Source: Phaeosaccion multiseriatum
Lineage: Eukaryota > Protista > Ochrophyta, other classes
Direction of reading: 5' to 3'
DNA length: 64,000 nucleotides
Assembly (NCBI GenBank): GCA_965112735.1
Contig: OZ218952.1
Location: 3,782,001-3,846,000, forward strand
Positions 27,500 to 31,055 of the stretch are shown here, piece after piece (position 1 is the stretch's first letter; the number at the start of each line of letters is the position of its first letter). The position numbers and the translations under genes were made by a program. The notes under the pieces were generated by a model that had not been told where the DNA came from, ran no database searches, and saw nothing but the letters and a program-made list of their open reading frames with translations.

Positions 27500-28169
27500 A
27501 GAGGGTTTCCGGCTGGACGCGCTCGCGATGTAGATGGTGGAGAGCGCCTGGACCCTCCTCCACCCCTGTGGCACCTCGTCGCTCTCCCGCATGAGCCTCA
27601 CCATCGGGGAGCAGTATTCTCCGGGGTCGCGTGGTTGGCGACGACGTGAGGACTCGGCAACTGTTCAACAACCTCATGAGCAACGCATCACAGCTCACAA
27701 CGTACGGCTCCAGCGACGTCTTTCTGGACGCTGAATAGACGAGCAGCAGCAGTGAGTCCGAGGCCGTGATGACTTCCTCCCTGTACGCGACACTGGCACC
27801 GGGATGGCACCTGACGCGGTCGAGCGCCTCTTCAAACACTTTGGTCCAGGTGCACGACAGCGCTACTGCCAATGCACAGCAGGGTACTGGCCTGGGGCTG
27901 GCCATCTCCACCGCCTTTCTGAGGCCATGGGAGGAGAATCGGGGGATGTGACCTACTCGTCGGTGTTGGGCAAAGGGTCAGAGTTTCGCTACACCTTTCA
28001 CGTGGAACGAAAGCTTTGCGAGGCTACCACTATGGCCCATCGGCGAGTGTACACAGAGATCACATTGCTTGTACGAATGGAAGGAGAGGCACTCATCCCA
28101 CCCAGTGAAGAGGGCACAGCCTACGTCCGGATCGGCGGCGAGCGCGACTCCGAGGGAAGGAGGAGTTGA
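27500..28169 (+). pseudogene. Degenerate intronless histidine kinase HATPase_c fragment
   Basis: N box VGDDVRTRQLFNNLMSNA (27634-27687), in-frame TAG at 27736, G1/F boxes VRDTGTGMAPDAVERLFKHF (27783-27842), G2 box GTGLGLAIS (about 27883-27909) and HRLSEAMGG...SVLGKGSEFRYTF. The boxes alternate between two frames, implying at least 3 frameshifts. Confidence 0.82.
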
Positions 28170-28408
28170 GAAGGGGCAATGGAGAAGCTACCCCCCCCCT
28201 TTTGTACTATACCACGCACGCTACTGGATGCGGAACACTCACTTCCTTGTTCCTTTGGGCGGTTCTTGACAACCAAAAAAAACAACTACAGTAGTTATAA
28301 AAGTAATTTGAAAGGGAACCGTGGTTTCCGACGCGTTGTGAGCTGTGTGTGAGCACGACGCCCAATCCAGAGAGAGGGAGAGATTTTTCCCTGCGCACAC
28401 GGAGAACA

Positions 28409-31055
28409 ATGGTGGACTTCCATAAGCTGGACGTGAGTGAGCGGAAGTGCTTCTGCAGGCAGCAGGTTTTGTGTAAAGGCTTGTCTGTACCAGGCCCAAC
28501 GTTGTGGAGACGGCAGATCCCCGTTAAAACACCCGGAGTACTCGCTCAACCTAACCACCTGTGTGCTCTCTCGTCTCCTCTCTCTTGTGGCCGCAGGAGA
28601 GGGCCCTATGGACGTACATTGGCCATCATGGTATACAGCGAATCAAGCGCGATGCGAGCCAGCAAGACTTGGCCGAGGCAGTAACACGGTGAGTGGGCCA
28701 TAGCAGTAAGAGCCTCCACACACATGCAGTAGGAGCAAACAGCGCCTCCCAGCCATAGCCTGCCCATTTTTCTTTGTCCGTCGTGGCCGCGCATCGCGTG
28801 TTCCTCTTTGAGCTTTCCTCCTCACCTTGCGACCCAGGCAAAAGAAACACAGAATGGAAGGGGAAAGGAGAGAAAAAGAAAGAGCAACAACTGTTCTGTG
28901 GAGAGAGAGAAGGGGGCCTCGGCCAGCGGCTGCTGGCGCCTGGCCGCTGTGCTAGGACAAATGCATGGGGCAGGGGGGGCACCGCTGTGGCTCATGCGTT
29001 CGGATAGAAGACCCCCTCTGGGGGAAAGGGAGGGGCGTGGCTCTGGGCCCTCTCCAAGCCTTTCTCTTCCTCCTGGCCCGCCACTTGGAGTAACTACTGC
29101 CGCACTATCCTCCATGCTTACTGCTGTCCTTTGAGCTCCCATACGACCCGCTTGCCCGTGGTTTACTTGCTGTGGAGTCTCCTTAAAAATGCCCGGCATG
29201 CAAACACGGTGGAAACACTTCCCCCCCGGACAACCCCCCTCTCAACTGCTTGTAGCAGCACGCACTCTTACCGCCCTCCTCTCTCAACGGCTTGTAGCAG
29301 CACGCACTCTGACCGCCCTCCTCCCTCTGCCCTTACTGCTGCTCCGCGTATGTGTCCTGTATCTGTCTCTGCAATCCTCTCGTGCCTGTGAACAAGGCAC
29401 TTCAACGACTGGCAAGTCGATGAGGAGTCCATCGTTACCAACTTTTGTCTCAGCGGGAGGGGCGGCTCCAGCAGCAACAGGGAGCTCTTGGGGGCCTCCT
29501 CCTCCTCCTCTGTTCCCCGCCGCCGAAAGAGGACGGAGTTTAGTCCATATGGACAGCACGGGCACGCGGCAGGAGGAGGAGAGGGGGGAGGAGGAGGGGG
29601 AGGGGCCAAGCACCAGAGACTGCACTCTCCGAGAGGAGGAGGCGGGATGGCAGTGGATGGAAGGTCGCTGGGGAGGCACACCTTCCTGCGACCAGGGGAG
29701 CAGGTGCGGTGCCGAGGGTGGTCTGGGTGGGTGTTTCATTGGCGTTTGGTTTGTTTCGTCTCTGGGGCTCTCGTTTTGTTCTTGCCTTCCCTTGCCCGTT
29801 GCCCTTTCTCTCCCTCTGTCTCTTTCTCTCTCTCTCTGTAATACACACTCGTCTCTCACGGTCTACCTCACTCGCTCTTTCCCCTTTCTCTTCTCCCTCC
29901 CCCCACCCACACACACGCTCTCGCACACGCACATACACAGGTGGCTGCCAAGGTGAGCCCTGGCGATGAGAACGGGTGCTGGATCCTTGCCAGAATTGTG
30001 CAATTCTTCAGGTGAGGTTCTGAGAGTCCATACGCTCCCGCTGTTATATGTTCCGTGGTGACACCCCACCCATCGACTCCAAAAGAATCCCCTGCAACCT
30101 CCTTGCTCACTTCCCTCCGTCTCGGTCCCTCTTCCTCCTCTTTTTCTCCCTCCACCCATGTCGACGACCCCACCCACCCCACCCTCCCTCCCTCCCTCCG
30201 TCTACCCTTAGCACCCTGGACCGCTATGAGGTTGCGGACGAAGACGATGCCTCTCGCCGCGTGATTGTGTCTGCCCAGAGCGTGCTGGAGCTCCACGACG
30301 GTCACGAGGGACTCCAGAAGGGGGAGGATGTGCTGGCCATGTTCCCAGAGACCACCTCCTTCTACCGCGGAAAGGTACGAGTATGTAATCTATATGCATC
30401 TCCTCCTCCTTCCTCCTCCTCCTCCTCCTCCTCCTCCTCCTCCTCCTCCTCCTCCTCCTCCTCCTCCTCCTCCTCCTCCTCCTCCTCCTCCTCCTCCTCC
30501 TCCTCCTCCTCCTCCTCCTCCTCCTCCTCCTCCTCCTCCTCCTCCTCCTCCTCCTCCTCCTCCTCCTCCTCCTCCTCCTCCTCCTCCTCCTCCTCCTCCT
30601 CCTCCTCCTCCTCCTCTCCTCCTCCTCCTCCTCCTCCTCCTCCTCCTCCTCCTCCTCTCCTCCTCCTCCTCCTCCTCCTCCTTCTCCTCCTCCTCCTCCT
30701 CCTCCTCCTCCTCCTCCTCCTCCTCCTCCTCTCTCGCCCCATTCCACCCCACCCCTCTCCCTCCTCCCTCACCTTTCCCCCCCCCCCCCTTCGTCCCCCC
30801 GCCCAACCCGAACGAACCCCCATTCCAACCCCACCCAAGGTGAGCAAGCCCGTGAAGCGTGGCTCAAGCGAATGCACCGTGCAATTCGAGGACGACGAGG
30901 AGGGGGGAAGGACGCCACACCGAAAGATTAACGTCCGTTACGTCATGAGAGGGCATCGCAACCCCATGTGCGGCCACTCGAGCGGGTCGTCGCCCTCCTC
31001 TTCCCCGTCTCGCTCCTTGTCCTTCAACTCTACAATGCCCTCTTACGGGTCGTGA
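28409..31055 (+). CDS. SGF29: SAP30 Sin3-binding domain fused to SGF29-type tandem Tudor domain (6 exons)
   Basis: Exons 28409-28432, 28597-28688, 29397-29703, 29941-30011, 30212-30374 and 30840-31055 join in consistent phase. N-terminus: MVDFHKLDERALWTYIGHHGIQRIKRDASQQDLAEAVTRHFNDWQVDEESIVTNF (SAP30 SBD pattern). C-terminus: GEQVAAKV...WILARIV...YEVADED...VLAMFPETTSFYRGKV...VQFEDDE (SGF29 Tudor). Confidence 0.88.
30401..30732 (+). repeat. (CCT)n trinucleotide microsatellite, about 330 bp, intronic
   Basis: Near-perfect CCT run inside intron 30375-30839. It produces the spurious poly-S/P/L/E/G/R ORFs. Confidence 0.97.

Follow-up and report, generated by a model that had tools for sequence, protein, structure and literature searches.

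A SAP30-like Sin3-interaction domain fused to an SGF29-type tandem Tudor in a predicted protein of Phaeosaccion multiseriatum and other ochrophytes

The wiring between readers of histone methylation and the enzymes that they serve is usually regarded as conserved, with the Tudor domain of SGF29 working alongside acetyltransferases and the plant homeodomain (PHD) fingers of ING proteins alongside either Sin3-histone deacetylase (HDAC) complexes or histone acetyltransferases. Whether this wiring has been altered in an algal lineage is the question raised by a gene of the ochrophyte Phaeosaccion multiseriatum, located at positions 28409-31055 (+ strand) of a 64,000-nucleotide stretch of contig OZ218952.1 (assembly GCA_965112735.1, positions 3,782,001 to 3,846,000), hereafter the window. 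SAP30 and SAP30L are core subunits of the Sin3L/Rpd3L complex that bind the PAH3 domain of Sin3, and SGF29 is a subunit of the SAGA/ATAC acetyltransferase module, anchored there by an N-terminal coiled-coil helix. The window gene appears to encode a SAP30-like Sin3-interaction domain (SID) and an SGF29-type tandem Tudor within a single chain.

Results

Splice sites and homology together confirmed the 28409-31055 locus as one real gene, with six exons and a predicted product of 290 residues. All five introns read from the genomic sequence are GT..AG. The three junctions proposed in an earlier, sequence-only reading of the window (28432/28597, 28688/29397, and 29703/29941) are each canonical and consistent in phase, and the N-terminus obtained after splicing is identical to the one quoted there. 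For the downstream junctions, a small enumeration of donors and acceptors left 30011/30212 and 30374/30840 as the sole combination giving both an open frame and a fit to homologues. Exons 2 to 6 were recovered independently and in order by tblastn with homologous proteins, including exon 2 at 28594-28689 with the homologue P0014, exon 4 with both P0110 and P0014, and exon 5 at 64% identity to P0110 from Tribonema, and the complete 290-residue model can be aligned end to end with 22 homologues. The two domains are physically joined by exon 3, a single open exon inside which the Tudor envelope begins, at residue 135. A GEQVAAKV motif that intron 3 interrupts in the window gene is uninterrupted in every aligned homologue.

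The N-terminal domain (residues 8-56) matches the Pfam family SAP30_Sin3_bdg (PF13867), for which the gathering score is 22.2 bits. The separate scores are 17.5 bits for exon 2 (profile positions 5-30) and 17.1 bits for the beginning of exon 3 (profile positions 33-49), and the joined first 62 residues reach 51.6 bits (E 1.2e-13, profile positions 2-49 of 53), such that the match predicted for the spliced N-terminus was obtained well above the cut-off. Profile comparison led to the same family: a profile built from the N-domains of related proteins matched the human SAP30 SID in its complex with PAH3 (chain 2LD7_A, E 2.8e-9 over 64 residues) as well as yeast Sap30 in three cryo-electron microscopy entries of Rpd3L (E 3e-7 to 8e-7). 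Hydrophobic positions common to SAP30 are conserved among the fusion proteins (L7, L12, Y15, L33, F41, V46, E48, and F55 in window numbering). A Gly/Ser-rich linker follows at residues 57-131.

A structure for this domain was predicted with AlphaFold2 (AF2) for the homologue P0014, using family alignments. The model comprises three helices followed by a disordered linker, with block means of the predicted local distance difference test of 77-94 in the N-domain model (residues 11-70) and 83-95 in the full-length one (residues 11-60). When the isolated N-domain model was compared to 350,542 chains with Foldseek, the SAP30L SID ranked first and the SAP30 SID second, with a probability of 0.99 but an E-value of about 0.05 and a TM score of 0.54, and yeast Sap30 ranked third and fourth. 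In a wide VIA structure search, the model matched residues 140-207 of SAP30 (2LD7) with Z 5.1 and yeast Sap30 with Z 5.0. The Sin3 interaction region of SAP30 has been reported to lie at residues 130-167 (PMC1500868), a segment that the aligned SAP30 stretch overlaps, and in yeast Rpd3L at least three Sap30 helices engage PAH3 of Sin3-I (PMC10224958).

Some of these observations weigh against equating the domain with SAP30. The predicted fold belongs to P0014, which is 43% identical to the window protein, and not to the window protein itself. The modelled structure, while consistent with a SAP30 SID, is ambiguous by itself and not decisive, because the VIA scores for SAP30 are tied by unrelated chains and because SAP and LEM helix-extended-helix domains align to model helices 1-2 with Z 3.7-4.8. 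Finally, the canonical SAP30 zinc finger is missing from the predicted protein: Pfam scans detected no SAP30-type zinc finger (PF13866) in the pieces of the window protein or in the scanned homologues, and the SID begins at residue 2.

The C-terminal half was identified as an SGF29-type tandem Tudor. The read-through open reading frame (ORF) at 30048-31052, which spans exons 5 and 6, scores 54.2 bits to SGF29_Tudor (PF07039), a local family hidden Markov model (HMM) matches residues 135-262 with 172 bits, and the family profile matches human SGF29 (3LX7/3ME9) with 98 bits. Foldseek likewise paired the AF2 model of P0014 with 3ME9 (E 2.4e-10) and 3MET, at E-values of about 1e-10; these are the complexes of SGF29 with H3K4me3 and H3K4me2, that is, histone H3 tri- and dimethylated at lysine 4. 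Pfam, family HMM, Protein Data Bank (PDB) profile, and Foldseek thus all agree with the tandem Tudor assignment of the sequence-only reading, and the motifs it had listed are all present: PRRRKR (residues 79-84), YEVADEDD (170-177), AMFPETTSFY (207-216), and VQFEDD (233-238).

The residues expected to contact the histone tail are conserved as well. In the alignment, human D194, D196, Y238, Y245, F264, and D266 correspond to D174, D176, F209, Y216, F235, and D237 of the window protein, the first two human residues being those of the H3A1 pocket. All six histone-pocket columns are kept, and they are invariant or nearly so among 23 family members. The composition of the SGF29 aromatic cage was taken from a published study (PMC4589357), in which the human Y238F variant bound H3K4me2/3 like the wild type. 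The fusion family differs from SGF29 in having Phe at the Y238 position throughout, which is compatible with H3K4me2/3 binding since human Y238F retains its affinity.

To what extent is this layout shared? Exon 5 was used as the query in an exhaustive HMMER search of 1.84 billion cluster representatives, which yielded 68 matches, 65 of them with a Pfam SGF29_Tudor domain and 25 with SAP30_Sin3_bdg in addition. A profile built from 21 full-length fusions then recovered 161 proteins, many of which already carry precomputed PF13867 and PF07039 labels, and an HMM made from the family's own N-domain detected both domains in 120 of 183 retrieved Tudor proteins. No significant match came from a word-indexed search for homologues that took as its query the Tudor exon within the read-through ORF. 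The fusion family is present in all of the named ochrophyte lineages that were sampled: Xanthophyceae (Tribonema minus), Chrysoparadoxophyceae (Chrysoparadoxa australica, two copies), Raphidophyceae (Chattonella subsalsa), diatoms (Aulacoseira subarctica, Proboscia alata, and Proboscia inermis), Bolidophyceae (Triparma columacea), Dictyochophyceae (Octactis speculum), and chrysophytes (Ochromonas danica and Mallomonas annulata). It also occurs in one foraminifer transcriptome, from Bolivina argentea, which may reflect contamination. Since MMETSP transcripts flagged 'type:complete' account for many of the members, a fused mRNA does exist in relatives.

The Tudor-only relatives were considered as canonical SGF29 proteins, and this was rejected, most of them being N-terminally truncated models that keep the last SAP30-like helix. 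Public models starting inside this helix (...EDDVV..F..K.C...) include P0153, P0160, P0162-P0168, P0170, P0171, and similar entries. The fusion is therefore hidden in current annotation, because the upstream exons were missed in many public gene models.

None of the 22 fusion proteins in the alignment exceeds about 43% identity to the window protein. A tree of the Tudor domains places the window protein, with moderate support (87/85), beside Tribonema, Chrysoparadoxa, and three unnamed sequences, and there its Tudor is most similar to that of P0110 (54% identity). Two forms of the protein can be distinguished across the family. The short form consists of the SID and the Tudor (about 230-300 residues), and the long form adds to these a C-terminal Forkhead-like winged helix that starts with a conserved LP..G.FK.ICPVW motif. 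Among ten proteins scanned, the winged helix passed the Pfam cut-off in P0024 (29.3 bits) and scored 17.7-22.7 bits in six others; long-form members are P0024, P0033, P0039, P0068, P0081, P0154, and P0157. Both forms occur together in Chrysoparadoxa (P0001, short; P0157, long). The window copy is of the short type, since tblastn found no winged-helix exon downstream of its stop codon.

Discussion

What would such a protein do? We consider it probable, with considerable room for doubt, that the SAP30-SID/SGF29-Tudor protein reads H3K4me2/3 as part of a Sin3L/Rpd3L-type deacetylase complex, in which its docking point is PAH3 of Sin3. The three-helix N-domain (residues 1-56) would wrap PAH3 as SAP30 does, making the protein a subunit of this complex, while the Tudor (residues 135-262) would bind the free H3 N-terminus together with K4me2/3. 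Separated by a presumably disordered Gly/Ser/basic linker with a PRRRKR motif resembling a nuclear localization signal, the two domains could together keep the deacetylase in place, or set its orientation, on nucleosomes methylated at H3K4 in promoters and 5' ends, in a manner analogous to the tethering attributed elsewhere to the PHD fingers of ING1/2 and Pho23. A deacetylase complex would in this way be tied to a chromatin mark regarded as 'active'. Sin3 binding, H3K4me binding, and the outcome on chromatin are what we infer for the window protein from these resemblances, and the delivery of a deacetylase complex to H3K4me2/3, as put forward in the sequence-only reading, is plausible on the same grounds.

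An alternative is that the protein acts as a free-standing H3K4me reader whose N-domain is a SAP/LEM-like helix-extended-helix module binding nucleic acids or proteins, and that it is not a constitutive HDAC subunit. The best single-sequence PDB match of the N-terminus (residues 24-55) is indeed the SAP domain of Ku70 (1JJR, E 0.0037), the many SAP and LEM alignments to helices 1-2 point the same way, and the long-form paralogues carry a Forkhead-like DNA-binding domain. Yet of the 79 residues in the model, the SAP/LEM matches span no more than about 40-50, whereas those to SAP30 span 68-69 residues at 21-23% identity, with profile E-values of 1e-7 to 1e-9 and a Pfam score more than twice the gathering cut-off. 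The SAP30 SID and SAP domains may also have the helix-extended-helix motif in common. We therefore regard a free-standing reader as unlikely.

It is also conceivable, if quite improbable, that the protein is simply the SGF29 of ochrophyte SAGA/ATAC, with an N-domain that serves as a lineage-specific dock on the acetyltransferase module or has some other role, so that acetylation at H3K4me3 would still be promoted. SGF29 is the closest solved Tudor, several family members are named 'SAGA-associated factor 29' by JGI, and no canonical SGF29 was found among the retrieved relatives, although a divergent one would lie beyond the reach of the searches used. However, the long N-terminal helix by which canonical SGF29 docks is absent, the AF2 model of P0014 showing three short helices and then a disordered linker in its place, and Pfam, PDB profiles, and the top Foldseek ranks all match the N-domain to the SAP30 SID. 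The weakest alternative, in which two adjacent genes or a pseudogene were merged by an over-optimistic splice model, might draw on the small size of exon 1 (24 nt) and the length of intron 2 (708 nt), but is very unlikely because exon 3 carries parts of both domains in one open exon and GEQVAAKV is continuous in homologues, and also in view of the same colinear layout in complete transcriptome ORFs of Proboscia and Chattonella, the database proteins of the same layout in six further ochrophyte lineages, and the intact state of every pocket and core residue.

A Sin3-docking H3K4me reader of this kind would combine features of several known systems while matching none of them. Like SAP30/SAP30L (yeast Sap30; plant AFR1/AFR2), the window protein has a predicted three-helix Sin3-interaction domain that passes the PF13867 cut-off and matches 2LD7 and Rpd3L Sap30 by profile; unlike SAP30, it has no N-terminal zinc finger, and its SID, which in SAP30 is found at the C-terminus, lies at the extreme N-terminus and is followed by a histone-methyl reader. 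With SGF29 (3ME9, 3MP1) it shares the tandem Tudor fold, the H3A1-pocket equivalents, and the K4me2/3 cage positions, whereas a SAP30-type domain stands in place of the N-terminal coiled-coil helix. The absence of this coiled coil had been noted in the sequence-only reading, and is borne out by the SAP30-like character of the first 56 residues and by the homologue's AF2 model, which includes no long helix.

The resemblance to ING1/ING2 and Pho23 (also Cti6) is one of proposed logic, namely an H3K4me3 reader that is attached flexibly to Sin3-HDAC and brings the complex to marked nucleosomes or orients it on them, as for the PHD fingers of Pho23 and Cti6, which are flexibly tethered in Rpd3L (PMC10224958). 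The reader of the window protein is a Tudor where theirs is a PHD finger, and its docking would take place at PAH3 through the SAP30 SID, in contrast to their Rxt2/Pho23 helical bundle. The sequence-only reading had gone further and suggested that the fusion might take the role of the ING/Pho23 PHD link. This suggestion is weakened by a second set of proteins that combine ING_N (PF12998, 44-59 bits) with an SGF29 tandem Tudor, namely P0012 (Fibrocapsa japonica), P0060 (Chrysoparadoxa australica), and P0047. In these, the Tudor sits where a PHD finger would be expected, and the Tudor tree unites them in a clade with good support. Replacement of ING by the fusion is doubtful because such ING_N-SGF29_Tudor proteins coexist with both fusion forms in Chrysoparadoxa.

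A broader scenario, which we hold at low probability, is that the SGF29-type Tudor was removed from SAGA altogether in ochrophytes and redeployed as the H3K4me reader of Sin3-type deacetylase complexes, that ochrophytes have no SAP30 orthologues other than the SAP30-Tudor proteins, and that their ING carries the same Tudor instead of a PHD finger. If so, a major algal lineage would have reversed the reader's usual pairing with acetylation, and the winged-helix long form would unite contacts to DNA, a histone mark, and a corepressor in one chain. A search for stand-alone SAP30 in ochrophytes with the N-domain of P0014 gave 6 candidates and 2 hits, and was uninformative either way.

Whether the architecture had already been catalogued was left open in the sequence-only reading. 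Public databases already contain it through automatic annotation, labelled with both Pfam families, though it is uncharacterized. Entries are named 'SGF29 C-terminal domain-containing protein' or 'SGF29 tudor-like domain-containing protein' in UniRef and NCBI and 'SAGA-associated factor 29' in JGI, and literature searches on SAP30 with SGF29, and on SGF29 in diatoms, Phaeodactylum, or stramenopiles, found nothing on a SAP30-SGF29 architecture in the collection of papers covered. H3K4me-reader subunits of Sin3-HDAC are known already; what has not been described is a Tudor fused directly to a predicted SAP30 SID and conserved across an algal lineage. One reader module on a putative Sin3-docking domain has been kept, with paralogues, across diatoms, chrysophytes, raphidophytes, xanthophytes, and their relatives. 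If the proposed docking is true, the family would represent a natural experiment in a rewired response to H3K4 methylation, directly testable in tractable diatoms and relevant to the way in which ecologically dominant algae reset acetylation at promoters. The family also points to a problem of annotation, in that SAGA/SGF29 names and lost N-terminal exons conceal the SAP30-like half.

Gene structure and neighbouring sequence

The features of the gene are listed in Table 1. The start codon has A at -3 and G at +4 and is preceded by an in-frame stop, and no ATG occurs between the TATAAAAG motif and this codon. The available ORF track reads through intron 5 because the length of this intron is a multiple of three and it contains no stop codon, and the aligned homologues have no insertion at this position.

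Table 1 Features of the SAP30-like/SGF29-type Tudor gene (coordinates are window positions)
Feature	Position	Strand	Length	Residues	Content and signals
TATAAAAG motif	28296..28303	+			Possible core promoter, proposed from a reading of the sequence; about 105 nt upstream of ATG
Exon 1	28409..28432	+	24 nt	1-8	Start codon and VDFHKLD motif; GTGAGT donor
Exon 2	28597..28688	+	92 nt	9-39	Middle of SAP30-like domain; CAG acceptor, GTGAGT donor
Exon 3	29397..29703	+	307 nt	39-141	Last SAP30-like helix (HFNDW...TNF), linker, first Tudor residues (LRPGEQ)
PRRRKR motif	29515-29532	+		79-84	In exon 3 linker; resembles a nuclear localization signal
Exon 4	29941..30011	+	71 nt	142-165	First Tudor strands (VAAKV...WILARIV); CAG acceptor, GTGAGG donor
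Exon 5	30212..30374	+	163 nt	165-219	Acidic pocket (D174, D176) and half of aromatic cage (F209, Y216); Pfam SGF29_Tudor
Intron 5	30375..30839	+	465 nt		Contains (CTC)~111 microsatellite at 30400-30731
Exon 6	30840..31055	+	216 nt	220-290 and stop	Remainder of cage (F235, D237), Tudor end at 262, Ser-rich tail

Retention of intron 5 would add about 155 Ser/Pro/Leu-rich residues within the Tudor and keep the frame. Intron 2 harbours a 42-bp tandem duplication at 29239-29327 (2.1 copies, 93% match). Among the Tudor relatives, P0191 (NCBI RYG66746.1, 'MAG: archaeon') is a 143-residue Tudor-family fragment that falls in a 90% cluster with the eukprot sequence P0118, and its contig is probably mis-binned eukaryotic DNA. 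An intronless ORF lies 240 nt upstream of the gene at 27804-28169 (+), and its end precedes the gene's promoter-like AT-rich stretch.

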